DNA of 64,000 nucleotides, taken from contig OZ059894.1 in NCBI GenBank assembly GCA_964057225.1, positions 17,980,001-18,044,000 of the forward strand, in the 5' to 3' direction. The notes beneath the pieces were generated by a model. It saw only the letters and a list, made by a program, of their open reading frames with translations, ran no database searches and was not told the origin of the DNA. Both the position numbers and the translations under genes were made by a program. Numbering within the stretch: the stretch's first letter is position 1; every line of letters begins with the position of its first letter. Shown one piece after another: positions 11,154-64,000 of the stretch. This DNA is from Auanema rhodensis (lineage: Eukaryota; Animalia; Nematoda).

Positions 11154-11159
11154 TTTCAG
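11154..11159 (+). promoter_or_regulatory. Probable trans-splice (or 5'UTR cis-splice) acceptor TTTCAG upstream of cdc-25 exon 1
   Basis: TTTCAG follows a long T-rich tract, 41 nt before ATG 11201. It matches the nematode acceptor consensus. Confidence 0.5.
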
Positions 11160-11200
11160 GTATTATTCTTCTGTTTGTAATAAAAATAATATAAGTAGAG

Positions 11201-18214: not shown

Positions 18215-18287
<73 letters not shown>

Positions 18288-18890: not shown

Positions 18891-18929
18891 TGTTTCGCAT
18901 TGTCTCAATATATTTCTTACTATAAAAAT

Positions 18930-18931
<2 letters not shown>

Positions 18932-19019
<88 letters not shown>
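18932..19019. repeat. (AT)n microsatellite, about 44 units
   Basis: Directly visible. It explains the IYIYIY ORFs in the track. Confidence 0.97.
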
Positions 19020-19022
<3 letters not shown>

Positions 19023-19875
19023 CCTGCATCTGTGTTTATTCATTTTTCAAGCTTATTGGATTTATTCACATTGTTGTCTGAAACGAAGACCGGGCTGTTT
19101 CTAACACTAAGATATATGTCTGTTTTTGGGAACAACTTCTTAGTATTTTTTCACTTGAAAGAAGCTTGCTGTCTGAGCCAATCATCTGTTTTCCTTGTTT
19201 TTCAAAAGTCACTCATTTAGGCATGGCCTCTTTGCGGCTTCTCTTTTCGTTCTTTTCATTTTTTATTTTTCACTATTTGTTTCTTCTCTAACTATTTTTT
19301 GTCATTTTTTGCTTGGAACTTTTTCTCACTTCTATAGTTCCGACCTCACTTAGTGGCATCACACTAATAGCTCGAAAACATACTGCAATTCAATATCTAG
19401 AAAATTGATTGTGTTTCAGCTATATCGCTCTTTCATCTGAAGAGTATTCAGTCGCAGAGATTCAAAAATATTTTTTGCATACTACACAAGTTAAAGTTTT
19501 TACTTAAGCTATTTAAACTCCGTATATTATTTCTTTCATGCTAGAGTTATAGTGTCTCAAAAACAGACTAACTTCTATAACAAGTTTCAAAATTATTGCT
19601 CCTGAGTTTTATTTCTTATGTTTTCAAAATGTTGCTTTGTATATCTAAGAATACTATTTGTATAAACATACCAAAACCTAAAATGTGTGTGTGTTTATTG
19701 TTTATACTTTTGTACATCCATGATATATCCTTGTCTTTTCGCTCCAGAAATGTCATTGCTCTTCAACTTTTAAAAATAAGAATTTTCGGTTTATTCTCAC
19801 ATTTCGTTTGGTGGATAATACAACATTCCAAATTAAAGTTAACTTGAAATCTGGACAATGACTTCTAGATAAACA

Positions 19876-22800
19876 ATGAAGGAGACATTGAATGGTACAG
19901 CCGGCTGGCATCAGTCAAAGAGGTAGTGACACGAAAATAGTTACCTGCCAAGTAAAATAGACACGTTCATTATCAAATGAGATTATGATGAATTTATATT
20001 TACAGTGGCTGCTTGCGTCCTTTGACACGCTTAGAGGTTGTCCTTCTTCTACTGTTGATTATCCTTATACTGTCTTTAATTGGAGTATTGGCTTGCTGGG
20101 TTTTGTTATTAGATGGCTACAAAATATTTTCACATGGTACATTTTAGATCGATAATTTCAGACTTATCAATATTTTTTTTTGAGTTTAATTATTCATTTT
20201 TGTATAGGATGGCCAATATATGGCTTAAGGAATTCATCCAGTTCTATAGGAATAGACAGAACCGCCTTGCATCATAATAATATTGTTTGTACTTCTCGAG
20301 AATGTGTTTTACTAGCTGGATTTCTAGCTGGGAATCTAAACGATAAGGTAGGGAAACGTTACAGTTTGTATCTTAACTTCGTTTAAGGTTGATCCTTGCG
20401 AAGATTTTTATGAGTTTGCTTGTGGAAATTATGGACTCAATCGTAATCTTCCTGCGAACAAGCCGTTACGACACACGATCAGTGATGTTCAATCGCGTTT
20501 GAACAAACAAGTAAAAAGTATTTTGCAGGTATTTTTTTTAAAATTCGTATTTCTAAGCTATCATTTTCAGCTACCTGTAACATCACATGAATCTAAATGG
20601 GATAAGCTGGCTAAAGAATACTATCAAAAATGCTTAGATGAAGGTAGTTTAAGGAATTCCATCCAGCATATATATATATATCTAAAGTATAACTTTTGTT
20701 CTAGAGAAACTTGAGCAGACAGGCAACGCCGCTATTTTAGAGGTGCTGGACTGGGTTGGTGGGTGGCCAACGTTGAAAGGTTTGAAAAGTCAGGAGAAGT
20801 TATTGAGTGTTGCTCATGTTCTCAGGAAAGAATTGGACAGAATGGGACTACTCATGGGAGCAACAATTGGCTGTTGTAATGAATAGAACAGGCGTCAATG
20901 CGGTAATTCTGGAATTAGCTGTCACTCATGATCCTTCTAACAGCTCAAAATCTGTTATTGAAGTTTCTTTTACATTTTTATTAAACGAGAAAAATGAAAT
21001 TTAAGCTTGATCAACCTAAGTGGGGAATAGGCTCAAGATGGCCGTATTTGTCAGGTGCAGAAGATCCGATGATTAAGAACTATACAAATCTCATGATACT
21101 ATCAGCTGTTGCCTTAGGTTAGAGTATAAATTGATAAAACATTCTTATTGTTATTTCAAGGTGCTGATCCCATAGTGGCAGAAAAAGACATGAAGGAAGC
21201 TATGGAATTGGAACTCAAGCTAGTAAACTTTTCCGCTGAAGAAATGGTCAGGCGAGATCCTGAACGAGGGAACAATCGTTATCAATTATGGCAACTCAAA
21301 AAACATTTTCCTTTGGTTTATTCAGATAAACCAACATGTATGCTAATATTTAATTCAGATCGACTTTGAAAAATACATAAAACGCATTTTTTATGATCTT
21401 GTTGAAGTAAGTCAAAATCATACAGTAATTATCAGGGAGACTGAATATTTTACTGGCATTCAGGTAAATAATTGACTTTAGTTATAATGATGATTCTATG
21501 GTTTTCAGCACATATTAAACTCCACACCAAAACGTGTAATAGCTAATTATATTGCTTGGAGAATTGTTCAAGGTACAATTCATGTATTGAAATAAAACTA
21601 AAAGTAGATATTTAAAAGGTTTTTCACCGTTTCTTCCTCCACGATCTCGTGTAGCATTCTATCAATTCAAAGCTAATCAAACTGGTATGTTCAACAGTCC
21701 TCCACCAGACAGGTAAATTTATTATGCTGTATTATTCTAGAATTATTCAATTTAGATGGGAAGATTGTGTTACGTTATCTGTCATTATGTTAGATATGCC
21801 TGTCGGAAAATTGTTTGTCGAAAACTTTTTTGAAAAAAGCAAGGCAATGGACAAAGTAAGTTTATGAAAAGTAAGCAAAGCATGAAGCAATATTAGAAAT
21901 ATTATTTTTATCGATATATATATGCTAACACATAATTACCTTGAACAAATATACGTTTTTACCATATGCCTCAGATGATATTATTCGTTTATTATGGATT
22001 GCTGACATATTTCTTAAGATGACTGAATTAACAACATTCCTCAAAGCAGAATTCATTAAACAGCTACATGTATTGGATTGGATGGATGACATCACAAGAA
22101 AGCGCGCAATCGAAAAGGTTAGTTTTTTCTTTTTCGTATTCCGATGTAGTGAGCATTTATACAGGCGGGAATGATTGAATATAAAAACGGTTTTCCCGAA
22201 CTTCTTTTTAATAACACATGGATGAATGAGCATTGGGGCATGGTATGATATTAGAATTGAAATAAGAAGATAAAAACATTAATTTGAGGACATAGTACCA
22301 AACGAGTACCTATTGCATTTTACAATCAGGATAAAACTAACTCGCTATACCGAAGAATTATTACGTCTTGATCAACCTTTAGACCGGTAAATCTAGATGA
22401 TTTTGATTCCAATCAATTTATTGTTCTTGTGTTGTAGAACCATGTGGTATCAAAGCCCTGCTCAAGTTGATGCTTATTATGCTCCAAACAACAATGAAAT
22501 GAGTAAGGCACATTAATGCATTAATTTTGAGTAAATGTCATATAGTATTCCCGGCTGGAATAATGCAGTTTCCTTTCCTAACAATTGGTGTGCCAAACTA
22601 TATCACATTTGGTATGGTTGGAGCTGTGATTGGTCATGAAGTATCACATGCGTTCGATGATCAAGGTAACTTCATCTATCCCAACAAATAAATATAATTA
22701 TTTCAAGGAGGTCAATATGATGAACTTGGAAACCTGAATGATTGGTGGGACTCGCAAACTGCTGAAAAATTTTCCGAAAAAACCAGGTGAGAGTAAAACC

Positions 22801-23357
22801 AAATGTTTGAAGCTTATTTTTTTAGATGCTTTATAAACCAATACAGCTCTATCAAAGTTGAAGAGGCTGGAATCAATTTGAATGGGCAGTTAAGCTTGGG
22901 AGAAAATATTGCGGATAATGGTGGTGTCAAAACAGCATTTAATGTTTTTAAAGTGTTAATAATACTTTTAACAGATCTGTTTAAGGCATATCGAGCATGG
23001 AGAACAAATTCCACAAGTTCTGAACCTGCATTGCCAGGCTTTCAAAATTATACAAGTGAACAAATGTTTTTTCTAGCTTATGCGAACGTATGTTGAATTG
23101 TTATTTAAAAATTAAATATTAAAAGTAATTCAGAATTGGTGTTCGGTTGTCCGAGCAAAGCATTACATACAGATTATTATAACTGATGTTCACGCACCCA
23201 GCAAATACCGTGCGATAATCCCTTTACAGGTAAAAAACTTTGAAAAAATTTAGAAACTCAGTAAGTATTTATTCAGAATCGTCCAGAATTCGCTGCAGCG
23301 TTCAAATGTTCACGGGGAACATCAATGAATCCAGAGAAAAAATGTCAAGTTTGGTGA
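19876..23357 (+). CDS. Neprilysin / endothelin-converting-enzyme-like M13 zinc metallopeptidase, type II membrane protein; about 23 exons
   Basis: Starts MKETLNGTAGWHQSKSGCLRPLTRLE, then a transmembrane helix (VVLLLLLIILILSLIGVLACWVLLL, exon 20006-20136). Further motifs: VDPCEDFYEFACG (20388 onward), GGWP, LDWMDDITRKRAIEK, VFPAGIMQFPF, zinc motif GHEVSHAFDDQG, ENIADNGG, QMFFLAYAN, DVHAPSKYR, and terminal MNPEKKCQVW with stop at 23355-23357. I count 22 GT..AG introns, most 40-60 bp. The exact nep paralogue cannot be identified from the sequence alone. Confidence 0.96.
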
Positions 23358-23597
23358 CGTAGCAAGAAAACCATATTTCGAATAGATAATATCTGCTACA
23401 CCCAATGTTAAAAAACAATTTTTGAAATATTTTTGCGAACAAATCGGAATTTTCGCTCATATTGTAGTGACTCTTTTTATAACTTCCGACAAAACTCATA
23501 TTCTCATGACTCCAACAACGTCTGGGCTTATTAGCCCATATATCATTTAAAAAACTGTTTTTTTTTCAAATGTCTGATCTCATACCAAACGAAATTT

Positions 23598-23603
23598 AAT
23601 AAA
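23598..23603 (+). terminator. Candidate polyadenylation signal AATAAA for the neprilysin gene
   Basis: First AATAAA I saw downstream of the stop, about 240 nt after it, followed by T/GT-rich sequence. Confidence 0.45.
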
Positions 23604-23659
23604 TTATATGTTTATACGTTTTTGTTTCTCAATTCCAGAATGGTGAAAAAAAATTTGGT

Positions 23660-23674
23660 TTAGGCTTAGCCTAA
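23660..23674. other. Head-to-head telomere-unit palindrome TTAGGC-TTA-GCCTAA (candidate chromosome-break / telomere-addition site), copy 1
   Basis: The sequence reads GGTTTAGGCTTAGCCTAATCATT. TTAGGC is the common nematode telomere repeat. The function is inferred. Confidence 0.5.
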
Positions 23675-24333
23675 TCATTAATTAGTCCTATGTTATAATG
23701 AACACGGAAATATTCAAAACTGTTTTTCATACACATGACCTCTTATAACGGGTCACCACGTGTACATTTAATTAGTATATTTTAAAGTTCACGTAAATTT
23801 CAAAGTTATCAAAACACCTTATGCACATCAAAGACTATGGACAATGTTATTCAACGGAAAAATTAATTCTTCAGGGTGAAAATCGAGGATATATGTGTGA
23901 ACTTATATCAGTTGATATCTCGGTGAGTGTACATGGAAACTCAACATACACTAATGCATCATTTTTCAAACGATCATAACTAATTTTTGTATTAAGCGTT
24001 TCTCAATGTAGTATAGTGCATTCGATGCGGATTTTTGAGCTGCGTTGATCTGTGTTATCAGATTTGCGCTAGCTTAAAAATGCACCGAGATATCAACTGA
24101 GATAAGTTCAAACATATATCCTCGATTTTCACCCTGAAGAATTAATTTTTTCGTTGAATAACATTGTCCATAGTCTTTGATGTGCATAAGGTGTTTTGAT
24201 AACTTTGAAATTTACGTGAACTTTAAAATATACTAATTAAATGTACACGTGGTGACCCGTTATAAGAGGTCATGTGTATGAAAAACAGTTTTGAATATTT
24301 CCGTGTTCATTATAACATAGGACTAATTAATGA

Positions 24334-24348
24334 TTAGGCTAAGCCTAA
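24334..24348. other. Mirror copy of the telomere-unit palindrome, TTAGGC-TAA-GCCTAA
   Basis: It lies in the right arm of the inverted repeat at the exact mirror position. Confidence 0.5.
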
Positions 24349-24540
24349 ACCAAATTTTTTTTCACCATTCTGGAATTGAGAAACAAAAACGTATAAACAT
24401 ATAATTTATTAAATTTCGTTTGGTATGAGATCAGACATTTGAAAAAAAAACAGTTTTTTAAATGATATATGGGCTAATAAGCCCAGATATCATTAAAAAA
24501 GTCATAGAGTCATGAGAATATGAGTTTTGTCGGAAGTTAT

Positions 24541-24570
24541 AATACATGAATTGTACCTTGAACAATTCTC
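24541..24570 (-). other. 30-bp templated insertion, reverse complement of 21559-21588 (a neprilysin exon/intron boundary)
   Basis: AATACATGAATTGTACCTTGAACAATTCTC is the exact reverse complement of GAGAATTGTTCAAGGTACAATTCATGTATT at 21559-21588. Confidence 0.95.
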
Positions 24571-27500
24571 ACGTAAATTTCAAAGTCATGGTTACCATGC
24601 ACCTATATCAATGAAAATTTGTTTTCAGTCTAATATGGAAATGGGGAATCTAATTTTGAAAACCGCATCTCTTTATCTTTTACGGGAAGCGAGTTACATA
24701 TCATGTGCCCATCACGTGTACATTTAATTAGCATAAATTAAAGTTCACGTAAATTTCAAAGTCATGGTTACCATGCACCAGTATCAATAGAAATTTGTTT
24801 TTGGACTAATATGGCCATGGGGAATCTAATTTTGAAAACCGCATCTCTTTATCTTTTACGGGAAACGAGTTACATATCATGTGCCCATCACGTGTACATT
24901 TAATTAGCATAAATTAAAGTTCACGTAAATTTCAAAGTCATGGTTACCATGCACCTATATCAATAAAAATTTGTTTTTAGACTAATATTAACATGGGGAA
25001 TCTAATTTTGAAAACCGCATCTCTTTATCTTTTACGGGAAACGAGTTACATATCATGTGCCCATCACGTGTACATTTAATTAGCATAAATTAAAGTTCAC
25101 GTAAATTTCAAAGTCATGGTTACCATGCACCTATATCAATAAAAATTTGTTTTTAGACTAATATTAACATGGGGAATCTAATTTTGAAAACCGCATCTCT
25201 TTATCTTTTACGGGAAACGAGTTACATATCATGTGCCCATCACGTGTACATTTAATTAGCATAAATTAAAGTTCACGTAAATTTCAAAGTCATGGTTACC
25301 ATGCACCTATATCAATAGAAATTTGTTTTCAGTCTAATATGGAAATGGGGAATCTAATTTTGAAAACCGCATCTCTTTATCTTTTACGGGAAACGAGTTA
25401 CATATCATGTGCCCATCACGTGTACATTTAATTAGCATAAATTAAAGTTCACGTAAATTTCAAAGTCATGGTTACCATGCACCTATATCAATGAAAATTT
25501 GTTTTTGGACTAATATGGCCATGGGGAATCTAATTTTGAAAACCACATCTCTTTATCTTTTACGGGAAGCGAGTTACATACCATGTGCACATCACGTGTA
25601 CATTTAATTAGCATAAATTAAAATTCACGTAAATTTCAAAGTCATGGTTACCATGCACCTAGATCAATGAAAATTTGTTTTTGGACTAATATGGCCATGG
25701 GGAGTGTAATTTTGAAAAGCACATCTCTTTATCTTTTACGGGAAGCGAGTTACATACCATGTGCACATCACGTGTACATTTAATTAGCATAAATTAAAAT
25801 TCACGTAAATTTCAAAGTCATGGTTACCATGCACCTATATCAATAGAAATTTGTTTTTAGTCTAATATGGCCATGGGGAATCTAATTTTGAAAACGGCAT
25901 CTCTTCATCTTTGAGTTACATACCATGTGTACATCACGTGTACATTTAATTAGCATAAATTAAAATTCACGTAAATTTCAAAGTCATGGTTACCATGCAC
26001 CTATATCAATAGAAATTTGTTTTTAGTCTAATATGGCCATGGGGAATCTAATTTTGAAAACGGCATCTCTTCATCTTTGAGTTACATACCATGTGTACAT
26101 CACGTGTACATTTAATTAGCATAAATTAAAGTTCACGTAAATTTCAAAGTCATGGTTACCATGCACCAATATCAACAAAAATTTGTTTTTAGACTAATAT
26201 GGACATGGGGAATCTAATTTTAAAAACCGCATCTCTTTATCTTTCACGTGAAGCGAGTTACATACCAAGTGCACATCACGTGTACATTTAATTAGCATAA
26301 ATTGAAGTTCACGTAAATTTCAAAGTCATGGTTACCATGAACCAATATCAATAAAAATTTGTTTTTAGACTAATATGGCCATGGGGAATCTAATTTTGAA
26401 AACGGCATCTCTTCATCTTTGAGTTACATACCATGTGTACATCACGTGTACATTTAATTAGCATAAATTAAAGTTCACGTAAATTTCAAAGTCATGGTTA
26501 CCATGCACCTATAACAATAAAAATTTGTTTTTAGTCTAATATGGCCATGGGGAATCTAATTTTGAAAACGGCATCTCTTCATCTTTGAGTTACATACCAT
26601 GTGTACATCACGTGTACATTTAATTAGCATAAATTAAAGTTCACGTAAATTTCAAAGTCATGGTTACTATGCGCCTATATCAATAAAAATTGGTTTTTAG
26701 ACTAATATGGCCATGGGGAGTGTAATTTTGAAAACCACATCTCTTTATCTTTTACGGGAAGCGAGTTACATATCATGTGCTCATCACGTGTACATTTAAT
26801 TAGCATAAATTAAAGTTCACGTAAATTTCAAAGTCATGGTTACCATGCACCTATATCAATAAAAATTTTTTTTCAGTCTAATATGGAAATGGGGAATCTA
26901 ATTTTGAAAACCGCATCTCTTTATCTTTTACGGGAAACGAGTTACATACCATGTGCACATCACGTGTACATTTAATTAGCATAAATTAAAATTCACGTAA
27001 ATTTCAAAGTCATGGTTACCATGCACCTAGATCAATGAAAATTTGTTTTTGGACTAATATGGCCATGGGGAGTGTAATTTTGAAAAGCACATCTCTTTAT
27101 CTTTTACGGGAAGCGAGTTACATACCATGTGCACATCACGTGTACATTTAATTAGCATAAATTAAAATTCACGTAAATTTCAAAGTCATGGTTACCATGC
27201 ACCTATATCAATAGAAATTTGTTTTTAGTCTAATATGGCCATGGGGAATCTAATTTTGAAAACGGCATCTCTTCATCTTTGAGTTACATACCATGTGTAC
27301 ATCACGTGTACATTTAATTAGCATAAATTAAAGTTCACGTAAATTTCAAAGTCATGGTTACCATGCACCTATAACAATAAAAATTTGTTTTTAGTCTAAT
27401 ATGGCCATGGGGAATCTAATTTTGAAAACGGCATCTCTTCATCTTTGAGTTACATACCATGTGTACATCACGTGTACATTTAATTAGCATAAATTAAAGT

Positions 27501-30500
27501 TCACGTAAATTTCAAAGTCATGGTTACTATACGCCTATATCAATAAAAATTGGTTTTTAGACTAATATGGCCATGGGGAGTGTAATTTTGAAAACCACAT
27601 CTCTTTATCTTTTACGGGAAGCGAGTTACATATCATGTGCACATCACGTGTACATTTAATTAGCATAAATTAAAATTCACGTAAATTTCAAAGTCATGGT
27701 TACCATGCACCTATATCAATGAAAATTTGTTTTTGGACTAATATGGCCATGGGGAGTGTAATTTTGAAAAGCACATCTCTTTATCTTTTACGGGAAACGA
27801 GTTACATACCATGTGCACATCACGTGTACATTTAATTAGCATAAATTAAAATTCACGTAAATTTCAAAGTCATGGTTACCATGCACCTAGATCAATGAAA
27901 ATTTGTTTTTGGACTAATATGGCCATGGGGAGTGTAATTTTGAAAAGCACATCTCTTTATCTTTTACGGGAAGCGAGTTACATACCATGTGCACATCACG
28001 TGTACATTTAATTAGCATAAATTAAAATTCACGTAAATTTCAAAGTCATGGTTACCATGCACCTATATCAATAGAAATTTGTTTTTAGTCTAATATGGCC
28101 ATGGGGAATCTAATTTTGAAAACGGCATCTCTTCATCTTTGAGTTACATACCATGTGTACATCACGTGTACATTTAATTAGCATAAATTAAAGTTCACGT
28201 AAATTTCAAAGTCATGGTTACCATGCACCTATAACAATAAAAATTTGTTTTTAGTCTAATATGGCCATGGGGAATCTAATTTTGAAAACGGCATCTCTTC
28301 ATCTTTGAGTTACATACCATGTGTACATCACGTGTACATTTAATTAGCATAAATTAAAGTTCACGTAAATTTCAAAGTCATGGTTACCATGCACCTATAT
28401 CAATAAAAATTTGTTTTCAGTCTAATATGGAAATGGGGATTCTAATTTTGAAAACCGCATCTCTTTATCTTTTACGGGAAACGAGTTACATACCATGTGC
28501 ACATCACGTGTACATTTAATTAGCATAAATTAAAATTCACGTAAATTTCAAAGTCATGGTTACCATGCACCTATATCAATAGAAATTTGTTTTTAGTCTA
28601 ATATGGCCATGGGGAATCTAATTTTGAAAACGGCATCTCTTCATCTTTGAGTTACATACCATGTGTACATCACGTGTACATTTAATTAGCATAAATTAAA
28701 GTTCACGTAAATTTCAAAGTCATGGTTACCATGCACCTATATCAATAGAAATTTGTTTTTAGTCTAATATGGCCATGGGGAATCTAATTTTGAAAACGGC
28801 ATCTCTTCATCTTTGAGTTACATACCATGTGTACATCACGTGTACATTTAATTAGCATAAATTAAAATTCACGTAAATTTCAAAGTCATGGTTACCATGC
28901 ACCTAGATCAATGAAAATTTGTTTTTGGACTAATATGGCCATGGGGAGTGTAATTTTGAAAAGCACATCTCTTTATCTTTCACGGGAAGCGAGTTACATA
29001 CCATGTGCACATCACGTGTACATTTAATTAGCATAAATTAAAATTCACGTAAATTTCAAAGTCATGGTTACCATGCACCTATATCAATAGAAATTTGTTT
29101 TTAGTCTAATATGGCCATGGGGAATCTAATTTTGAAAACGGCATCTCTTCATCTTTGAGTTACATACCATGTGTACATCACGTGTACATTTAATTAGCAT
29201 AAATTAAAGTTCACGTAAATTTCAAAGTCATGGTTACCATGCACCTATAACAATAAAAATTTGTTTTTAGTCTAATATGGAAATGGGGAATCTAATTTTG
29301 AAAACCGCATCTCTTTATCTTTTACGGGAAACGAGTTACATACCATGTGCTCATCACGTGTACATTTAATTAGCATAAATTGAAGTTCACGTAAATTTCA
29401 AAGTCATGGTTACCATGCACCTATATCAATAAAAATTTGTTTTCAGTCTAATATGGAAATGGGGAATCTAATTTTGAAAACCGCATCTCTTTATCTTTTA
29501 CGGGAAACGAGTTACATACCATGTGTACATCACGTGTACATTTAATTAGCATAAATTAAAGTTCACGTAAATTTCAAAGTCATGGTTACTATGCACCTAT
29601 AACAATAAAAATTTGTTTTTAGTCTAATATGGCCATGGGGAATCTAATTTTGAAAACGGCATCTCTTCATCTTTGAGTTACATACCATGTGTACATCACG
29701 TGTACATTTAATTAGCATAAATTAAAGTTCACGTAAATTTCAAAGTCATGGTTACCATGCACCTATATCAATAAAAATTTGTTTTCAGTCTAATATGGAA
29801 ATGGGGAATCTAATTTTGAAAACCGCATCTCTTTATCTTTTACGGGAAGCGAGTTACATACCATGTGTACATCACGTGTACATTTAATTAGCATAAATTA
29901 AAATTCACGTAAATTTCAAAGTCATGGTTACCATGCACCTAGATCAATGAAAATTTGTTTTTGGACTAATATGGCCATGGGGAGTGTAATTTTGAAAAGC
30001 ACATCTCTTTATCTTTCACGGGAAGCGAGTTACATACCATGTGCACATCACGTGTACATTTAATTAGCATAAATTAAAATTCACGTAAATTTCAAAGTCA
30101 TGGTTACCATGCACCTATATCAATAGAAATTTGTTTTTAGTCTAATATGGCCATGGGGAATCTAATTTTGAAAACGGCATCTTTTCATCTTTGAGTTACA
30201 TACCATGTGTACATCACGTGTACATTTAATTAGCATAAATTAAAGTTCACGTAAATTTCAAAGTCATGGTTACCATGCACCTATAACAATAAAAATTTGT
30301 TTTTAGTCTAATATGGCCATGGGGAATCTAATTTTGAAAACGGCATCTCTTCATCTTTGAGTTACATACCATGTGTACATCACGTGTACATTTAATTAGC
30401 ATAAATTAAAGTTCACGTAAATTTTAAAGTCATGGTTACTATGCGCCTATATCAATAAAAATTGGTTTTTAGACTAATATGGCCATGGGGAGTGTAATTT

Positions 30501-33500
30501 TGAAAACCACATCTCTTTATCTTTCACGGGAAGCGAGTTACATATCATGTGCTCATCACGTGTACATTTAATTAGCATAAATTAAAGTTCACGTAAATTT
30601 CAAAGTCATGGTTACCATGCACCTATATCAATAAAAATTTTTTTTCAGTCTAATATGGAAATGGGGAATCTAATTTTGAAAACCGCATCTCTTTATCTTT
30701 TACGGGAAACGAGTTACATACCATGTGCACATCACGTGTACATTTAATTAGCATAAATTAAAATTCATGTAAATTTCAAAGTCATGGTTACCATGCACCT
30801 ATATCAATAGAAATTTGTTTTCAGACTAATATTAACATGGGGAATCTAATTTTGAAAACCGCATCTCTTTATCTTTTACGGGAAGCGAGTTACATACCAT
30901 GTGCACATCACGTGTACGTTTAATTAGCATAAATTAAAATTCACGTAAATTTCAAAGTCATGGTTACCATGCACCTATATCAATAGAAATTTGTTTTTAG
31001 TCTAATATGGCCATGGGGAATCTAATTTTGAAAACGGCATCTCTTCATCTTTGAGTTACATACCATGTGTACATCACGTGTACATTTAATTAGCATAAAT
31101 TAAAATTCACGTAAATTTCAAAGTCATGGTTACCATGCACCTATATCAATAAAAATTTTTTTTCAGTCTAATATGGAAATGGGGAATCTAATTTTGAAAA
31201 CCGCATCTCTTTATCTTTTACGGGAAACGAGTTACATACCATGTGTACATCACGTGTACATTTAATTAGCATAAATTAAAGTTCACGTAAATTTCAAAGT
31301 CATGGTTACCATGCACCTATAACAATAAAAATTTGTTTTTAGTCTAATATGGCCATGGGGAATCTAATTTTGAAAACGGCATCTCTTCATCTTTGAGTTA
31401 CATACCATGTGTACATCACGTGTACATTTAATTAGCATAAATTAAAGTTCACGTAAATTTCAAAGTCATGGTTACTATGCGCCTATATCAATAAAAATTG
31501 GTTTTTAGACTAATATGGCCATGGGGAGTGTAATTTTGAAAACCACATCTCTTTATCTTTTACGGGAAGCGAGTTACATATCATGTGCTCATCACGTGTA
31601 CATTTAATTAGCATAAATTAAAGTTCACGTAAATTTCAAAGTCATGGTTACCATGCACCTATATCAATAAAAATTTTTTTTCAGTCTAATATGGAAATGG
31701 GGAATCTAATTTTGAAAACCGCATCTCTTTATCTTTTACGGGAAACGAGTTACATACCATGTGCACATCACGTGTACATTTAATTAGCATAAATTAAAAT
31801 TCACGTAAATTTCAAAGTCATGGTTACCATGCACCTAGATCAATGAAAATTTGTTTTTGGACTAATATGGCCATGGGGAGTGTAATTTTGAAAAGCACAT
31901 CTCTTTATCTTTTACGGGAAGCGAGTTACATACCATGTGCACATCACGTGTACATTTAATTAGCATAAATTAAAATTCACGTAAATTTCAAAGTCATGGT
32001 TACCATGCACCTATATCAATAGAAATTTGTTTTTAGTCTAATATGGCCATGGGGAATCTAATTTTGAAAACGGCATCTCTTCATCTTTGAGTTACATAAC
32101 ATGTGTACATCACGTGTACATTTAATTAGCATAAATTAAAGTTCACGTAAATTTCAAAGTCATGGTTACCATGCACCTATAACAATAAAAATTTGTTTTT
32201 AGTCTAATATGGCCATGGGGAATCTAATTTTGAAAACGGCATCTCTTCATCTTTGAGTTACATACCATGTGTACATCACGTGTACATTTAATTAGCATAA
32301 ATTAAAATTCACGTAAATTTCAAAGTCATGGTTACCATGCACCTATATCAATAAAAATTTTTTTTCAGTCTAATATGGAAATGGGGAATCTAATTTTGAA
32401 AACCGCATCTCTTTATCTTTTACGGGAAACGAGTTACATACCATGTGTACATCACGTGTACATTTAATTAGCATAAATTAAAGTTCACGTAAATTTCAAA
32501 GTCATGGTTACCATGCACCTATAACAATAAAAATTTGTTTTTAGTCTAATATGGCCATGGGGAATCTAATTTTGAAAACGGCATCTCTTCATCTTTGAGT
32601 TACATACCATGTGTACATCACGTGTACATTTAATTAGCATAAATTAAAGTTCACGTAAATTTCAAAGTCATGGTTACTATGCGCCTATATCAATAAAAAT
32701 TGGTTTTTAGACTAATATGGCCATGGGGAGTGTAATTTTGAAAACCACATCTCTTTATCTTTTACGGGAAGCGAGTTACATATCATGTGCTCATCACGTG
32801 TACATTTAATTAGCATAAATTAAAGTTCACGTAAATTTCAAAGTCATGGTTACCATGCACCTATATCAATAAAAATTTTTTTTCAGTCTAATATGGAAAT
32901 GGGGAATCTAATTTTGAAAACCGCATCTCTTTATCTTTTACGGGAAACGAGTTACATACCATGTGCACATCACGTGTACATTTAATTAGCATAAATTAAA
33001 ATTCACGTAAATTTCAAAGTCATGGTTACCATGCACCTAGATCAATGAAAATTTGTTTTTGGACTAATATGGCCATGGGGAGTGTAATTTTGAAAAGCAC
33101 ATCTCTTTATCTTTTACGGGAAGCGAGTTACATACCATGTGCACATCACGTGTACATTTAATTAGCATAAATTAAAATTCACGTAAATTTCAAAGTCATG
33201 GTTACCATGCACCTATATCAATAGAAATTTGTTTTTAGTCTAATATGGCCATGGGGAATCTAATTTTGAAAACGGCATCTCTTCATCTTTGAGTTACATA
33301 ACATGTGTACATCACGTGTACATTTAATTAGCATAAATTAAAGTTCACGTAAATTTCAAAGTCATGGTTACCATGCACCTATAACAATAAAAATTTGTTT
33401 TTAGTCTAATATGGCCATGGGGAATCTAATTTTGAAAACGGCATCTCTTCATCTTTGAGTTACATACCATGTGTACATCACGTGTACATTTAATTAGCAT

Positions 33501-36500
33501 AAATTAAAGTTCACGTAAATTTCAAAGTCATGGTTACCATGCACCTATATCAATAAAAATTTGTTTTCAGTCTAATATGGAAATGGGGATTCTAATTTTG
33601 AAAACCGCATCTCTTTATCTTTTACGGGAAACGAGTTACATACCATGTGCACATCACGTGTACATTTAATTAGCATAAATTAAAATTCACGTAAATTTCA
33701 AAGTCATGGTTACCATGCACCTATATCAATAGAAATTTGTTTTTAGTCTAATATGGCCATGGGGAATCTAATTTTGAAAACGGCATCTCTTCATCTTTGA
33801 GTTACATACCATGTGTACATCACGTGTACATTTAATTAGCATAAATTAAAGTTCACGTAAATTTCAAAGTCATGGTTACCATGCACCTATAACAATAAAA
33901 ATTTGTTTTTAGTCTAATATGGCCATGGGGAATCTAATTTTGAAAACGGCATCTCTTTATCTTTTACGGGAAGCGAGTTACATACCATGTGCACATCACG
34001 TGTACATTTAATTAGCATAAATTAAAATTCACGTAAATTTCAAAGTCATGGTTACCATGCACCTATATCAATAGAAATTTGTTTTTAGTCTAATATGGCC
34101 ATGGGGAATCTAATTTTGAAAACGGCATCTCTTCATCTTTGAGTTACATACCATGTGTACATCACGTGTACATTTAATTAGCATAAATTAAAGTTCACGT
34201 AAATTTCAAAGTCATGGTTACCATGCACCTATAACAATAAAAATTTGTTTTTAGTCTAATATGGCCATGGGGAATCTAATTTTGAAAACGGCATCTCTTC
34301 ATCTTTGAGTTACATACCATGTGTACATCACGTGTACATTTAATTAGCATAAATTGAAGTTCACGTAAATTTCAAAGTCATGGTTACTATGCGCCTATAT
34401 CAATAAAAATTGGTTTTTAGACTAATATGGCCATGGGGAGTTTAATTTTGAAAACCACATCTCTTTATCTTTTACGGGAAGCGAGTTACATATCATGTGC
34501 TCATCACGTGTACATTTAATTAGCATAAATTGAAGTTCACGTAAATTTCAAAGTCATGGTTACCATGCACCTATATCAATAAAAATTTGTTTTCAGTCTA
34601 ATATGGAAATGGGGAATCTAATTTTGAAAACCGCATCTCTTTATCTTTTACGGGAAACGAGTTACATACCATGTGTACATCACGTGTACATTTAATTAGC
34701 ATAAATTAAAGTTCACGTAAATTTCAAAGTCATGGTTACTATGCACCTATAACAATAAAAATTTGTTTTTAGTCTAATATGGCCATGGGGAATCTAATTT
34801 TGAAAACGGCATCTCTTCATCTTTGAGTTACATACCATGTGTACATCACGTGTACATTTAATTAGCATAAATTAAAGTTCACGTAAATTTCAAAGTCATG
34901 GTTACCATGCACCTATATCAATAAAAATTTGTTTTCAGTCTAATATGGAAATGGGGAATCTAATTTTGAAAACCGCATCTCTTTATCTTTTACGGGAAAC
35001 GAGTTACATACCATGTGCACATCACGTGTACATTTAATTAGCATAAATTAAAATTCACGTAAATTTCAAAGTCATGGTTACCATGCACCTAGATCAATGA
35101 AAATTTGTTTTTGGACTAATATGGCCATGGGGAGTGTAATTTTGAAAAGCACATCTCTTTATCTTTTACGGGAAGCGAGTTACATACCATGTGCACATCA
35201 CGTGTACATTTAATTAGCATAAATTAAAATTCACGTAAATTTCAAAGTCATGGTTACCATGCACCTATATCAATAGAAATTTGTTTTTAGTCTAATATGG
35301 CCATGGGGAATCTAATTTTGAAAACGGCATCTTTTCATCTTTGAGTTACATACCATGTGTACATCACGTGTACATTTAATTAGCATAAATTAAAGTTCAC
35401 GTAAATTTCAAAGTCATGGTTACCATGCACCTATAACAATAAAAATTTGTTTTTAGTCTAATATGGCCATGGGGAATCTAATTTTGAAAACGGCATCTCT
35501 TCATCTTTGAGTTACATACCATGTGTACATCACGTGTACATTTAATTAGCATAAATTAAAGTTCACGTAAATTTCAAAGTCATGGTTACCATGCACCTAT
35601 ATCAATAAAAATTTGTTTTCAGTCTAATATGGAAATGGGGAATCTAATTTTGAAAACCGCATCTCTTTATCTTTTACGGGAAACGAGTTACATACCATGT
35701 GCACATCACGTGTACATTTAATTAGCATAAATTAAAATTCACGTAAATTTCAAAGTCATGGTTACCATGCACCTAGATCAATGAAAATTTGTTTTTAGTC
35801 TAATATGGCCATGGGGAATCTAATTTTGAAAAGCACATCTCTTTATCTTTTACGGGAAGCGAGTTACATACCATGTGCACATCACGTGTACATTTAATTA
35901 GCATAAATTAAAATTCACGTAAATTTCAAAGTCATGGTTACCATGCACCTATATCAATAGAAATTTGTTTTTAGTCTAATATGGCCATGGGGAATCTAAT
36001 TTTGAAAACGGCATCTTTTCATCTTTGAGTTACATACCATGTGTACATCACGTGTACATTTAATTAGCATAAATTAAAGTTCACGTAAATTTCAAAGTCA
36101 TGGTTACCATGCACCTATAACAATAAAAATTTGTTTTTAGTCTAATATGGCCATGGGGAATCTAATTTTGAAAACGGCATCTCTTCATCTTTGAGTTACA
36201 TACCATGTGTACATCACGTGTACATTTAATTAGCATAAATTAAAGTTCACGTAAATTTTAAAGTCATGGTTACTATGCGCCTATATCAATAAAAATTGGT
36301 TTTTAGACTAATATGGCCATGGGGAGTGTAATTTTGAAAACCACATCTCTTTATCTTTCACGGGAAGCGAGTTACATATCATGTGCTCATCACGTGTACA
36401 TTTAATTAGCATAAATTAAAGTTCACGTAAATTTCAAAGTCATGGTTACCATGCACCTATATCAATAAAAATTTTTTTTCAGTCTAATATGGAAATGGGG

Positions 36501-39500
36501 AATCTAATTTTGAAAACCGCATCTCTTTATCTTTTACGGGAAACGAGTTACATACCATGTGCACATCACGTGTACATTTAATTAGCATAAATTAAAATTC
36601 ATGTAAATTTCAAAGTCATGGTAACCATGCACCTATATCAATAGAAATTTGTTTTCAGACTAATATGAACATGGGGAATCTAATTTTGAAAACCGCATCT
36701 CTTTATCTTTTACGGGAAGCGAGTTACATACCATGTGCACATCACGTGTACGTTTAATTAGCATAAATTAAAATTCACGTAAATTTCAAAGTCATGGTTA
36801 CCATGCACCTATATCAATAGAAATTTGTTTTTAGTCTAATATGGCCATGGGGAATCTAATTTTGAAAACGGCATCTCTTCATCTTTGAGTTACATACCAT
36901 GTGTACATCACGTGTACATTTAATTAGCATAAATTAAAATTCACGTAAATTTCAAAGTCATGGTTACCATGCACCTATATCAATAAAAATTTTTTTTCAG
37001 TCTAATATGGAAATGGGGAATCTAATTTTGAAAACCGCATCTCTTTATCTTTTACGGGAAACGAGTTACATACCAGGTGCACATCACGTGTACGTTTAAT
37101 TAGCATAAATTAAAATTCACGTAAATTTCAAAGTCATGGTTACCATGCACCTATATCAATAGAAATTTGTTTTTAGTCTAATATGGCCATGGGGAATCTA
37201 ATTTTGAAAACGGCATCTCTTCATCTTTGAGTTACATACCATGTGTACATCACGTGTACATTTAATTAGCATAAATTAAAATTCACGTAAATTTCAAAGT
37301 CATGGTTACCATGCACCTATATCAATAGAAATTTGTTTTTAGTCTAATATGGCCATGGGGAATCTAATTTTGAAAACGGCATCTCTTCATCTTTGAGTTA
37401 CATACCATGTGTACATCACGTGTACATTTAATTAGCATAAATTAAAGTTCACGTAAATTTCAAAGTCATGGTTACTATACGCCTATATCAATAAAAATTG
37501 GTTTTTAGACTAATATGGCCATGGGGAGTGTAATTTTGAAAACCACATCTTTTTATCTTTTACGGGAAGCGAGTTACATATCATGTGCTCATCACGTGTA
37601 CATTTAATTAGCATAAATTAAAGTTCACGTAAATTTCAAAGTCATGGTTACCATGCACCTATATCAATAAAAATTTGTTTTCAGTCTAATATGGAAATGG
37701 GGAATCTAATTTTGAAAACCGCATCTCTTTATCTTTTACGGGAAACGAGTTACATACCATGTGCACATCACGTGTACATTTAATTAGCATAAATTAAAAT
37801 TCACGTAAATTTCAAAGTCATGGTTACCATGCACCTATATCAATAGAAATTTGTTTTTAGTCTAATATGGCCATGGGGAATCTAATTTTGAAAACGGCAT
37901 CTCTTCATCTTTGAGTTACATACCATGTGTACATCACGTGTACATTTAATTAGCATAAATTAAAGTTCACGTAAATTTCAAAGTCATGGTTACCATGCAC
38001 CTATAACAATAAAAATTTGTTTTTAGTCTAATATGGCCATGGGGAATCTAATTTTAAAAACGGCATCTCTTTATCTTTTACGGGAAGCGAGTTACATACC
38101 ATGTGCACATCACGTGTACATTTAATTAGCATAAATTAAAATTCACGTAAATTTCAAAGTCATGGTTACCATGCACCTATATCAATAGAAATTTGTTTTT
38201 AGTCTAATATGGCCATGGGGAATCTAATTTTGAAAACGGCATCTCTTCATCTTTGAGTTACATACCATGTGTACATCACGTGTACATTTAATTAGCATAA
38301 ATTAAAATTCACGTAAATTTCAAAGTCATGGTTACCATGCACCTAGATCAATGAAAATTTGTTTTTAGTCTAATATGGCCATGGGGAATCTAATTTTGAA
38401 AACGGCATCTCTTCATCTTTGAGTTACATACCATGTGTACATCACGTGTACATTTAATTTGCATAAATTAAAGTTCACGTAAATTTCAAAGTCATGGTTA
38501 CCATGCACCTATAACAATAAAAATTTGTTTTTAGTCTAATATGGCCATGGGGAATCTAATTTTGAAAACGGCATCTCTTCATCTTTGAGTTACATACCAT
38601 GTGTACATCACGTGTACATTTAATTAGCATAAATTAAAGTTCACGTAAATTTCAAAGTCATGGTTACTATGCGCCTATATCAATAAAAATTGGTTTTTAG
38701 ACTAATATGGCCATGGGGAGTTTAATTTTGAAAACCACATCTCTTTATCTTTTACGGGAAGCGAGTTACATATCATGTGCTCATCACGTGTACATTTAAT
38801 TAGCATAAATTGAAGTTCACGTAAATTTCAAAGTCATGGTTACCATGCACCTATATCAATAAAAATTTGTTTTCAGTCTAATATGGAAATGGGGAATCTA
38901 ATTTTGAAAACCGCATCTCTTTATCTTTTACGGGAAACGAGTTACATACCATGTGTACATCACGTGTACATTTAATTAGCATAAATTAAAGTTCACGTAA
39001 ATTTCAAAGTCATGGTTACTATGCACCTATAACAATAAAAATTTGTTTTTAGTCTAATATGGCCATGGGGAATCTAATTTTGAAAACGGCATCTCTTCAT
39101 CTTTGAGTTACATACCATGTGTACATCACGTGTACATTTAATTAGCATAAATTAAAGTTCACGTAAATTTCAAAGTCATGGTTACTATGCGCCTATATCA
39201 ATAAAAATTGGTTTTTAGACTAATATGGCCATGGGGAGTGTAATTTTGAAAACCACATCTCTTTATCTTTTACGGGAAGCGAGTTACATATCATGTGCTC
39301 ATCACGTGTACATTTAATTAGCATAAATTAAAGTTCACGTAAATTTCAAAGTCATGGTTACTATGCACCTATAACAATAAAAATTTGTTTTTAGTCTAAT
39401 ATGGCCATGGGGAATCTAATTTTGAAAACGGCATCTCTTCATCTTTGAGTTACATACCATGTGTACATCACGTGTACATTTAATTAGCATAAATTAAAGT

Positions 39501-42500
39501 TCACGTAAATTTCAAAGTCATGGTTACTATGCGCCTATATCAATAAAAATTTGGTTTTTAGACTAATATGGCCATGGGGAGTGTAATTTTGAAAACCACA
39601 TCTCTTTATCTTTTACGGGAAGCGAGTTACATATCATGTGCTCATCACGTGTACATTTAATTAGCATAAATTAAAGTTCACGTAAATTTCAAAGTCATGG
39701 TTACCATGCACCTATATCAATAAAAATTCGTTTTCAGTAAAATATGGCCATGGGGAATCTAATTTTGAAAACGGCATCTCTTTATCTTTTACGGGAAACG
39801 AGTTACATACCATGTGCACATCACGTGTACATTTAATTAGCATAAATTAAAATTCACGTAAATTTCAAAGTCATGGTTACCATGCACCTATATCAATAGA
39901 AATTTGTTTTTAGTCTAATATGGCCATGGGGAATCTAATTTTGAAAACGGCATCTCTTCATCTTTGAGTTACATACCATGTGTACATCACGTGTACATTT
40001 AATTAGCATAAATTAAAGTTCACGTAAATTTCAAAGTCATGGTTACTATGCACCTATAACAATAAAAATTTGTTTTTAGTGTAATATGGCCATGGGGAAT
40101 CTAATTTTGAAAACGGCATCTCTTCATCTTTGAGTTACATACCATGTGTACATCACGTGTACATTTAATTAGCATAAATTAAAGTTCACGTAAATTTCAA
40201 AGTCATGGTTACTATGCACCTATAACAATAAAAATTTGTTTTTAGTCTAATATGGCCATGGGGAATCTAATTTTGAAAACGGCATCTCTTCATCTTTGAG
40301 TTACATACCATGTGTACATCACGTGTACATTTAATTAGCATAAATTAAAGTTCACGTAAATTTCAAAGTCATGGTTACTATGCACCTATAACAATAAAAA
40401 TTTGTTTTTAGTCTAATATGGCCATGGGGAATCTAATTTTGAAAACGGCATCTCTTCATCTTTGAGTTACATACCATGTGTACATCACGTGTACATTTAA
40501 TTAGCATAAATTAAAGTTCACGTAAATTTCAAAGTCATGGTTACTATGCACCTATAACAATAAAAATTTGTTTTTAGTCTAATATGGCCATGGGGAATCT
40601 AATTTTGAAAACGGCATCTCTTCATCTTTGAGTTACATACCATGTGTACATCACGTGTACATTTAATTAGCATAAATTAAAGTTCACGTAAATTTCAAAG
40701 TCATGGTTACTATGCGCCTATATCAATAAAAATTGGTTTTTAGACTAATATGGCCATGGGGAGTGTAATTTTGAAAACCACATCTCTTTATCTTTTACGG
40801 GAAGCGAGTTACATATCATGTGCTCATCACGTGTACATTTAATTAGCATAAATTAAAGTTCACGTAAATTTCAAAGTCATGGTTACCATGCACCTATATC
40901 AATAAAAATTCGTTTTCAGTCTAATATGGCCATGGGGAATCTAATTTTGAAAACGGCATCTCTTAATCTTTTACGGGAAACGAGTTACATACCATGTGCA
41001 CATCACGTGTACATTTAATTAGCATAAATTAAAATTCACGTAAATTTCAAAGTCATGGTTACCATGCACCTATATCAATAAAAATTCGTTTTCAGTCTAA
41101 TATGGCCATGGGGAATCTAATTTTGAAAACCACATCTCTTTATCTTTCACGGGAAGCGAGTTACATATCATGTGCTCATCACGTGTACATTTAATTAGCA
41201 TAAATTAAAGTTCACGTAAATTTCAAAGTCATGGTTACTATGCGCCTATATCAATAAAAATTGGTTTTTAGACTAATATGGCCATGGGGAGTGTAATTTT
41301 GAAAACCACATCTCTTTATCTTTTACGGGAAACGAGTTACATACCATGTGTACATCACGTGTACATTTAATTAGCATAAATTAAAGTTCACGTAAATTTC
41401 AAAGTCATGGTTACTATGCACCTATAACAATAAAAATTTGTTTTTAGTCTAATATGGCCATGGGGAGTGTAATTTTGAAAACCACATCTCTTTATCTTTT
41501 ACGGGAAGCGAGTTACATATCATGTGCTCATCACGTGTACATTTAATTAGCATAAATTAAAGTTCACGTAAATTTCAAAGTCATGGTTACCATGCACCTA
41601 TATCAATAAAAATTCGTTTTCAGTCTAATATGGCCATGGGGAATCTAATTTTGAAAACGGCATCTCTTCATCTTTGAGTTACATACCATGTGTACATCAC
41701 GTGTACATTTAATTAGCATAAATTAAAGTTCACGTAAATTTCAAAGTCATGGTTACTATGCGCCTATATCAATAAAAATTGGTTTTTAGACTAATATGGC
41801 CATGGGGAGTGTAATTTTGAAAACCACATCTCTTTATCTTTTACGGGAAGCGAGTTACATATCATGTGCTCATCACGTGTACATTTAATTAGCATAAATT
41901 AAAGTTCACGTAAATTTCAAAGTCATGGTTACCATGCACCTATATCAATAAAAATTCGTTTTCAGTCTAATATGGCCATGGGGAATCTAATTTTGAAAAC
42001 GGCATCTCTTAATCTTTTACGGGAAACGAGTTACATACCATGTGCACATCACGTGTACATTTAATTAGCATAAATTAAAATTCACGTAAATTTCAAAGTC
42101 ATGGTTACCATGCACCTATATCAATAGAAATTTGTTTTTAGTCTAATATGGCCATGGGGAATCTAATTTTGAAAACGGCATCTCTTCATCTTTGAGTTAC
42201 ATACCATGTGTACATCACGTGTACATTTAATTAGCATAAATTAAAGTTCACGTAAATTTCAAAGTCATGGTTACCATGCACCTATAACAATAAAAATTTG
42301 TTTTTAGTCTAATATGGCCATGGGGAATCTAATTTTGAAAACGGCATCTCTTCATCTTTGAGTTACATACCATGTGTACATCACGTGTACATTTAATTAG
42401 CATAAATTAAAGTTCACGTAAATTTCAAAGTCATGGTTACTATGCGCCTATATCAATAAAAATTGGTTTTTAGACTAATATGGCCATGGGGAGTGTAATT

Positions 42501-45500
42501 TTGAAAACCACATCTCTTTATCTTTTACGGGAAGCGAGTTACATATCATGTGCTCATCACGTGTACATTTAATTAGCATAAATTAAAGTTCACGTAAATT
42601 TCAAAGTCATGGTTACCATGCACCTATATCAATAAAAATTTGTTTTCAGTCTAATATGGAAATGGGAAATCTAATTTTGAAAACCGCATCTCTTTATCTT
42701 TTACGGGAAACGAGTTACATACCATGTGCACATCACGTGTACATTTAATTAGCATAAATTAAAATTCATGTAAATTTCAAAGTCATGGTTACCATGCACC
42801 TATATCAATAGAAATTTGTTTTCAGACTAATATTAACATGGGGAATCTAATTTTGAAAACCGCACCTCTTTATCTTTTACGGGAAGCGAGTTACATACCA
42901 TGTGCACATCACGTGTACGTTTAATTAGCATAAATTAAAGTTCACGTAAATTTCAAAGTCATGGTTACCATGCACCTATATCAATAAAAATTCGTTTTTA
43001 GTCTAATATGGCCATGGGGAATCTAATTTTGAAAACGGCATCTCTTTATCTTTTACGGGAAACGAGTTACATACCATGTGCACATCACGTGTACATTTAA
43101 TTAGCATAAATTAAAATTCACGTAAATTTCAAAGTCATGGTTACCATGCACCTATATCAATAGAAATTTGTTTTTAGTCTAATATGGCCATGGGGAATCT
43201 AATTTTGAAAACGGCATCTCTTCATCTTTGAGTTACATACCATGTGTACATCACGTGTACATTTAATTAGCATAAATTAAATATTCACATAAATTCACGT
43301 AAATTTCAAAGTCATGGTTACCATGCACCTATAACAATAAAAATTTGTTTTCATCTTTGAGTTACATACCATGTGTACATCACGTGTACATTTAATTAGC
43401 ATAAATTAAAGTTCACGTAAATTTCAAAGTCATGGTTACTATGCACCTATAACAATAAAAATTTGTTTTTAGTCTAATATGGCCATGGGGAATCTAATTT
43501 TGAAAACGGCATCTCTTCATCTTTGAGTTACATACCATGTGTACATCACGTGTACATTTAATTAGCATAAATTAAAGTTCACGTAAATTTCAAAGTCATG
43601 GTTACTATGCACCTATAACAATAAAAATTGGTTTTTAGACTAATATGGCCATGGGGAGTGTAATTTTGAAAACCACATCTCTTTATCTTTTACGGGAAGC
43701 GAGTTACATATCATGTGCTCATCACGTGTACATTTAATTAGCATAAATTAAAGTTCACGTAAATTTCAAAGTCATGGTTACCATGCACCTATAACAATAA
43801 AAATTTGTTTTTAGTCTAATATGGCCATGGGGAATCTAATTTTGAAAACGGCATCTCTTCATCTTTGAGTTACATACCATGTGTACATCACGTGTACATT
43901 TAATTAGCATAAATTAAAGTTCACGTAAATTTCAAAGTCATGGTTACTATGCGCCTATATCAATAAAAATTGGTTTTTAGACTAATATGGCCATGGGGAG
44001 TGTAATTTTGAAAACCACATCTCTTTATCTTTTACGGGAAGCGAGTTACATATCATGTGCTCATCACGTGTACATTTAATTAGCATAAATTAAAGTTCAC
44101 GTAAATTTCAAAGTCATGGTTACCATGCACCTATATCAATAAAAATTTGTTTTCAGTCTAATATGGAAATGGGAAATCTAATTTTGAAAACCGCATCTCT
44201 TTATCTTTTACGGGAAACGAGTTACATACCATGTGCACATCACGTGTACATTTAATTAGCATAAATTAAAATTCATGTATATTTCAAAGTCATGGTTACC
44301 ATGCACCTATATCAATAGAAATTTGTTTTCAGACTAATATTAACATGGGGAATCTAATTTTGAAAACCGCATCTCTTTATCTTTTACGGGAAGCGAGTTA
44401 CATACCATGTGCACATCACGTGTACGTTTAATTAGCATAAATTAAAGTTCACGTAAATTTCAAAGTCATGGTTACCATGCACCTATATCAATAAAAATTC
44501 GTTTTTAGTCTAATATGGCCATGGGGAATCTAATTTTGAAAACGGCATCTCTTCATCTTTGAGTTACATACCATGTGTACATCACGTGTACATTTAATTA
44601 GCATAAATTAAAGTTCACGTAAATTTCAAAGTCATGGTTACTATGCACCTATAACAATAAAAATTTGTTTTTAGTGTAATATGGCCATGGGGAATCTAAT
44701 TTTGAAAACGGCATCTCTTCATCTTTGAGTTACATACCATGTGTACATCACGTGTACATTTAATTAGCATAAATTAAAGTTCACGTAAATTTCAAAGTCA
44801 TGGTTACTATGCACCTATAACAATAAAAATTTGTTTTTAGTCTAATATGGCCATGGGGAATCTAATTTTGAAAACGGCATCTCTTCATCTTTGAGTTACA
44901 TACCATGTGTACATCACGTGTACATTTAATTAGCATAAATTAAAGTTCACGTAAATTTCAAAGTCATGGTTACTATGCACCTATAACAATAAAAATTTGT
45001 TTTTAGTCTAATATGGCCATGGGGAATCTAATTTTGAAAACGGCATCTCTTCATCTTTGAGTTACATACCATGTGTACATCACGTGTACATTTAATTAGC
45101 ATAAATTAAAGTTCACGTAAATTTCAAAGTCATGGTTACTATGCACCTATAACAATAAAAATTTGTTTTTAGTCTAATATGGCCATGGGGAATCTAATTT
45201 TGAAAACGGCATCTCTTCATCTTTGAGTTACATACCATGTGTACATCACGTGTACATTTAATTAGCATAAATTAAAGTTCACGTAAATTTCAAAGTCATG
45301 GTTACTATGCGCCTATATCAATAAAAATTGGTTTTTAGACTAATATGGCCATGGGGAGTGTAATTTTGAAAACCACATCTCTTTATCTTTTACGGGAAGC
45401 GAGTTACATATCATGTGCTCATCACGTGTACATTTAATTAGCATAAATTAAAGTTCACGTAAATTTCAAAGTCATGGTTACCATGCACCTATATCAATAA

Positions 45501-63500: not shown

Positions 63501-64000
63501 TAATATGGCCATGGGGAGTGTAATTTTGAAAACCACATCTCTTTATCTTTTACGGGAAGCGAGTTACATATCATGTGCACATCACGTGTACATTTAATTA
63601 GCATAAATTAAAGTTCACGTAAATTTCAAAGTCATGGTTACCATGCACCAGTATCAATAGAAATTTGTTTTTGGACTAATATGGCCATGGGGAATCTAAT
63701 TTTGAAAACCGCATCTCTTTATCTTTTACGGGAAGCGAGTTACATACCATGTGTACATCACGTGTACATTTAATTAGCATAAATTAAAGTTCACGTAAAT
63801 TTCAAAGTCATGGTTACCATGCGCCTATATCAATAAAAATTGGTTTTTAGATTAATATGGCCATGGGGAGTGTAATTTTGAAAACCACATCTCTTTATCT
63901 TTTACGGGAAGCGAGTTACATATCATGTGCACATCACGTGTACATTTAATTAGCATAAATTAAAGTTCACGTAAATTTCAAAGTCATGGTTACCATGCAC
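24569..64000 (+). repeat. Satellite DNA tandem array of 176-bp and 166-bp monomers, about 230 copies in the window, running off the right edge
   Basis: The period measured from the TCACGTAAATTTC anchor is 176 (24569 to 24745) or 166 (25801 to 25967). Approximate consensus: TCACGTAAATTTCAAAGTCATGGTTACCATGCACCTATATCAATAAAAATTTGTTTTTAGTCTAATATGGCCATGGGGAATCTAATTTTGAAAACCGCATCTCTTTATCTTTTACGGGAAGCGAGTTACATACCATGTGCACATCACGTGTACATTTAATTAGCATAAATTAAAGT. The ORF track has no entry starting within the array. Confidence 0.99.

Follow-up and report, generated by a model that had tools for sequence, protein, structure and literature searches.

The window, the whole stretch of 64,000 nucleotides that was analyzed, very probably contains an autosomal border of Auanema rhodense at which a retained gene-rich region adjoins a terminal block of the AT-1 satellite, and the 29-nt motif at 23653-23681, here called SFE-1, is on the same reading the SFE (Sequence For Elimination) of that border. 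An earlier, sequence-only reading had taken this position for an elimination break and telomere-healing site; that interpretation is supported by the identity of the satellite with AT-1, by the published loss of AT-1 from somatic nuclei, and by the published occurrence of a 29-nt SFE at gene-rich/repeat-rich borders. The elimination system itself is already published (bioRxiv 10.64898/2026.08.27.747507), the expectation that a site such as this one would be cut and healed is taken from the literature, and SFE-1 is very probably one of the 28 break sites described there for A. rhodense. On this reading, the locus shows to the single base the point at which programmed breakage and re-capping of a nematode chromosome would occur in body cells, and such break sites are recognizable from raw sequence. 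The features on which this account is based are collected in Table 1.

Table 1. Features of the A. rhodense window, in base-pair order
Feature	Position	Strand	Description
M13 peptidase (neprilysin family), last retained gene	20013..23357	+	Start approximate; Pfam PF01431 and PF05649 on exon ORFs
Fold-back, left (original) arm	23477..23925	+	Last part of the neprilysin 3'UTR (including AATAAA), then SFE-1 and 244 bp distal to it
SFE-1	23653..23681	.	Predicted primary somatic break and telomere-addition site; gene side left, eliminated side right
Core GGC-TTA-GCC (GGCT-T-AGCC)	23663..23671	.	Predicted cut and telomere addition between 23666 and 23667
56-nt block	23754..23809	+	73 bp distal to SFE-1; matches a portion of the AT-1 monomer at 91% identity; mirrored at 24199-24254
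Asymmetric spacer between arms, 157 nt	23926..24082	.
Fold-back, right (copied) arm	24083..24542	-	Has 3 mismatches to the left arm over its inner 405 nt, and a small rearranged patch
SFE-2	24327..24355	.	Identical inverted copy of SFE-1, 674 bp distal
Junction filler, 30 nt	24541..24570	-	Between the right arm and the satellite; exact reverse complement of 21559-21588
AT-1 (autosomal-terminal, eliminated) satellite	24569..64000	+	TRF, AT-1 FISH probe matches, and monomer spacing; runs off the window end

The border between gene-rich and satellite DNA

SFE-1 is located at a transition from gene-rich to repeat-rich DNA, with the M13 peptidase on one side and the AT-1 satellite on the other. The ORFs of the neprilysin-family gene contain the motifs HEVSH and GENIADNGG (from the ORF list), and the predicted protein ends in ...KCQVW with its stop codon at 23355-23357, placing the end of the gene 296 bp upstream of SFE-1. 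The motif had been described as lying some 60 bp beyond the poly(A) signal of this gene; an AATAAA is indeed present at 23598-23603, ~50 bp ahead of SFE-1, and the predicted cut would fall ~65 bp past it. The 97-aa neprilysin exon ORF was used in an exact look-up for public short-read contigs carrying the healed end, with no match, and a search for its homologues with the same aim returned only proteins of at most 88% identity from other sources. Further to the left, every ORF of at least 75 aa in positions 1-19000 is on the + strand, and both the GC and the AT skews are negative there; the negative skews suggest that this part of the window holds short-exon genes on the - strand. Ten of the + strand ORFs in 1-19 kb gave no match to Pfam, and positions 1-26 kb contained no Rfam family.

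The satellite begins 888 bp after SFE-1 and takes up all 39.4 kb from there to the end of the window, which bears out the earlier description of a motif ~0.9 kb ahead of at least 39 kb of satellite. Its identity was examined using four FISH probe sequences given in the methods of bioRxiv 10.64898/2026.08.27.747507, one for AT-1 (named 'A-elim') and three for the X chromosome. The 28-nt AT-1 probe has one exact match in the satellite (26260-26287, and thus in one monomer only), together with 55 matches at one mismatch and 124 at two, whereas none of the three X-chromosome probes matched the window within 8 mismatches. Judged by these matches to the published probe, the satellite of the window is the AT-1 repeat of A. 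rhodense or, given the single exact match, conceivably that of a very close relative. In that species, AT-1 FISH signal is seen in every nucleus up to and including the 8-cell stage, but from the 12-cell stage it is gone from somatic nuclei and is seen in micronucleus-like bodies (bioRxiv 10.64898/2026.08.27.747507).

The AT-1 monomers are predominantly 176 bp (146 spacings) and 166 bp (76 spacings) in length. The two lengths are mixed in recurring runs, an arrangement that suggests a higher-order repeat organization of the array. A few spacings of 129 bp and 346 bp represent irregular units, and the first five monomers at the junction are a distinct variant that differs from the AT-1 probe by three mismatches.

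A lenient BLAST alignment of 23646-23809 with the AT-1 monomer extends over 167 nt at 68% identity and passes through the motif; SFE-1 stands opposite the monomer stretch AAAAATTTGTTTTTAGACTAATATTAA, at the correct distance from the shared 56-nt block. The notion that SFE-1 resides inside a decayed AT-1 monomer was nevertheless judged unproven: without the 56-nt block the left part of the alignment did no better than shuffles (local score 16, as compared to 12.5 +/- 2.2), and its in-register z-scores ranged from -0.7 to 3.4 depending on the monomer.

Sequence and rarity of the putative break motif

Read directly, positions 23653-23681 are ATTTGGTTTAGGC-TTA-GCCTAATCATTAA, so that TTAGGC stands opposite GCCTAA across the spacer TTA; the facing telomere units and the 3-nt spacer noted by the sequence-only reading are thus present, with the same letters, at exactly those positions. 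The 29-mer is a degenerate palindrome in which 9 of 14 pairs are complementary, the right half being degenerate and five pairs broken, and its 15-nt core TTAGGCTTAGCCTAA (23660-23674) is an odd palindrome, perfect on both sides of a central T. Only four GGC-N3-GCC strings occur in the 64 kb, and GGCT.AGCC is restricted to the two copies of the motif. When up to two mismatches were allowed, the 15-mer matched only SFE-1 and its inverted twin (24334-24348); shuffled sequences gave a mean of 0.06 matches, and in none of 100 shuffles was a count of four reached. From base composition, ~5 x 10^-5 exact copies of the 15-mer would be expected by chance in the 24.5-kb non-satellite part of the window. 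The two motif copies go back to one event, duplicated by the fold-back, and are counted as a single occurrence.

The telomere hexamer itself is not enriched in the window (seven TTAGGC observed vs ~17 expected), and four of the seven fall within the two motif copies. The A+T content of the 40 nt on either side of SFE-1 is 72.5%, a value that hardly discriminates it from the ~68% of the whole window. A hairpin or cruciform role for the motif was considered and set aside: the core folds only into a 6-bp hairpin (-3.9 kcal/mol), adding nothing beyond the palindrome itself. Another GGC-N3-GCC, the third in the window, was found at 19210-19238, upstream of the neprilysin gene and presumably in retained DNA. 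It has a telomere-like left half (CATTTAGGC-ATG-GCCTC) and 7 of 14 palindromic pairs, lacks GGCT.AGCC, and by its sequence is probably a chance occurrence.

Comparison with known elimination motifs

In A. rhodense, every one of the 28 internal break sites was reported to have a palindromic SFE of 29 nt at whose center telomeres are added; the internal telomere-addition sites number four per autosome and all coincide with transitions from high-coverage, gene-rich to low-coverage, repeat-rich DNA (bioRxiv 10.64898/2026.08.27.747507, 28 Aug 2026). At an SFE of this species, somatic reads would be expected to be clipped into telomere repeats at the center of the motif, with a step in coverage (about 236x to 29x). 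SFE-1 is likewise a 29-nt palindrome at a gene-rich/tandem-repeat border, has AT-1 as its neighbor, and has its predicted addition point at the center. The four bases before its central T mirror the four after it (GGCT-T-AGCC), a symmetry that would be compatible with the published motif as described in the text, and by that textual comparison there is no demonstrable difference between the two. The predicted cut at 23666/23667 corresponds to positions 14/15 of the 29-mer, the position rule being taken from the same preprint (bioRxiv 10.64898/2026.08.27.747507). Bases 23667-23669 (TAG) also fit the telomere repeat, and sequence up to 23669 is indistinguishable from it; therefore, the first base that separates germline from healed DNA is 23670. 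The published assembly was made after telomere-ended reads had been removed (bioRxiv 10.64898/2026.08.27.747507), and for that reason the window shows the germline, read-through form of the locus.

The Oscheius tipulae SFE had been described in the earlier reading as a degenerate palindrome of ~29 bp whose GGC and GCC prime telomere synthesis on both ends, and the literature confirms this: the O. tipulae element is a 29-bp degenerate palindrome with ultra-conserved GGC (11-13) and GCC (17-19) on either side of a conserved 3-bp spacer, and the GGC/GCC prime new telomeres on both ends (PMC13060919). The consensus has TTTA at 1-4, AGGT at 4-7, and a conserved GG at 5-6, and up to 8 mismatched pairs are tolerated (PMC13060919). 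At the O. tipulae positions that can be derived from the text, SFE-1 matches in register, carrying GGC at 11-13, GCC at 17-19, the GG pair at 5-6, and a T at each of 2, 3, and 7. Scored against a consensus that was rebuilt from the published text and not from the logo, SFE-1 matches 11 of the 13 positions given; once palindromic symmetry is used to fill in the rest of the consensus, it matches 15 of 20. The latter is the highest score in the window, where the next best is one 29-mer at 13, followed by five at 12. Over the outer seven bases (ATTTGGT, as compared to TTTAGGT in O. tipulae), five match, and positions 1 and 4 deviate from the text-derived consensus.

Overall, SFE-1 and the O. tipulae element are alike in being 29-bp degenerate palindromes with GGC and GCC 3 bp apart and with T-rich outer bases in register (10.1101/2022.08.19.504554; PMC13060919). 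They differ in that each half of SFE-1 contains a whole TTAGGC unit, whereas that of O. tipulae contains only the GGC. The genomes also differ in how much is discarded: 0.6% of the O. tipulae genome is lost, from the chromosome ends and containing little satellite, as against about 61% in A. rhodense, most of it satellite. In C. auriculariae and C. monodelphis as well as in C. parvicauda, telomere addition is also precise and marked by a motif, and satellites are enriched in the eliminated DNA; however, the Caenorhabditis SFEs are non-palindromic, either bipartite or a single 24-bp element, and sit upstream of the addition site instead of extending across it (PMC13370393).

A fold-back structure and a second motif

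SFE-1 forms part of a mirror-image structure of ~1 kb, the two arms of which are 99% identical. The left arm follows on from the gene without interruption and is thus the original; the right arm stops at the equivalent of position 23477 and is followed by the filler and then by the satellite. The sequence that the filler matches is located 2 kb upstream, at an exon/intron border in the neprilysin gene, and there are 2-nt overlaps at both filler ends. Right arm and filler keep the collinear order of the gene region, but inverted. The eliminated side contains inverted copies of the break signal, of some of the neprilysin 3'UTR, and of 30 nt from the gene body.

Chromosomes 1, 2, and 3 of A. rhodense each have a second high-scoring motif within 1.1 kb downstream of where the break falls, and a few telomere reads start at these secondary motifs (bioRxiv 10.64898/2026.08.27.747507). 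SFE-2, at 674 bp, is alike in position and is likely, by analogy with the motifs so described, to be a back-up break site inside eliminated DNA; O. tipulae also possesses alternative sites in eliminated DNA, which act as a fail-safe. Since the two 29-mers are identical, a somatic end formed at the distal twin, or at some other nearby site, with SFE-1 unused or minor, would be an alternative form of the same elimination border. Swapping the orientation of the O. tipulae consensus leaves it functional, and some good motif matches in that species stay uncut, usage not being decided by sequence alone (PMC13060919). We nonetheless regard this alternative as unlikely: the extra motifs on chromosomes 1-3 are downstream of the break, in eliminated DNA, and have few telomere reads (bioRxiv 10.64898/2026.08.27.747507), and, if both copies were cut, it is the proximal cut that would set the retained end. 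We infer that SFE-1, rather than its twin, is the site used from the wording of the preprint, which places the extra motifs downstream of the break.

A different origin for the palindrome is that it arose by chance or is a relic without any role in breakage, for example one left by a former telomere-telomere fusion or belonging to a fold-back mobile element. A scar from telomere fusion would be expected to have TTAGGC and GCCTAA facing each other in this way, and the motif is within a 1-kb inverted repeat that has a 56-nt core in common with the satellite. However, there is but a single telomere unit per side, with no degenerate repeat tract; the number of copies expected by chance in the unique part of the window is minute, as given above; and the position, length, spacer, and outer GG all fit published descriptions of SFEs. 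Nor is the structure a mobile element, because its arms include 3'UTR and a poly(A) signal that belong to the host gene, and no obvious target-site duplication is present in the bases flanking the arm ends. A relic or chance origin was consequently judged highly improbable.

Near-perfect palindromes are a known class of artefact in long-read data, and the 99% identity of the arms might arouse the same suspicion here. That the fold-back and second motif were created during assembly (e.g., from a chimeric palindromic long read), leaving only SFE-1 as real, is scarcely credible, because the asymmetric 157-nt spacer, the three arm mismatches, the rearranged patch, and the filler with its template 2 kb upstream are what a real rearrangement would show, and because the curated assembly was reported with second motifs within 1.1 kb on three chromosomes (bioRxiv 10.64898/2026.08.27.747507).

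Predicted course of breakage and healing

With SFE-1 as the elimination site, breakage would take place in pre-somatic blastomeres at the ~8- to 12-cell stage, when an SFE-recognizing factor would direct a double-strand break at the center of the palindrome (~23666/23667). After resection, the 3' terminus would read ...TTTAGGC(T) at the gene-side end and ...ATTAGGC(T) at the satellite-side end, each of them a complete telomere unit, and telomerase would then add (TTAGGC)n to both. The gene-side fragment would be retained, its new somatic chromosome end lying ~65 bp past the neprilysin poly(A) signal, whereas the satellite side would enter micronucleus-like bodies and be degraded. The inverted twin at 24327-24355 would remain as a spare site in the discarded DNA.

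Possible origin of the fold-back

The collinearity of the right arm and filler would fit fold-back replication involving template switches, or else an initially larger palindrome that deletions have trimmed. By its sequence, the 30-nt filler would accordingly be described as either a templated insertion or the leftover of a once longer inverted gene copy. Fold-back inverted duplications known from humans (PMC3907307) and yeast (PMC7467729) similarly have inverted arms, a short unique spacer, microhomology, and templated filler at the outer junction; those, however, are associated with disease or were obtained experimentally, whereas the tie to a programmed break site is here only positional, and the resemblance is one of the surrounding structure, not of the motif. 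It is conceivable, though we hold it with some doubt, that germline breaks near SFEs are occasionally mended by fold-back replication with template switching, yielding spare SFEs and germline-restricted gene copies. If this were true, fold-back repair would account for eliminated DNA gaining paralogues of retained genes.

The main text of bioRxiv 10.64898/2026.08.27.747507 makes no mention of inverted duplications at break sites, and a literature search combining nematode programmed DNA elimination with fold-back or inverted duplication found no paper linking the two. Two details of this locus seem undescribed, namely that the SFE pair constitutes the arms of a fold-back and that templated gene sequence is present at the outer junction. 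A fold-back with such a junction hints at the origin of back-up break signals and of germline-only gene copies.

The 157-nt spacer was also considered as an older, decayed palindrome, but its score of 17 is not significant when compared to shuffles (12.9 +/- 3.2). The sole indel between the arms is a 19-nt patch in the right arm (24488-24506) that replaces 8 nt at 23513-23520. By eye, the patch resembles local duplications of neighboring bases, which would suggest local template slippage.
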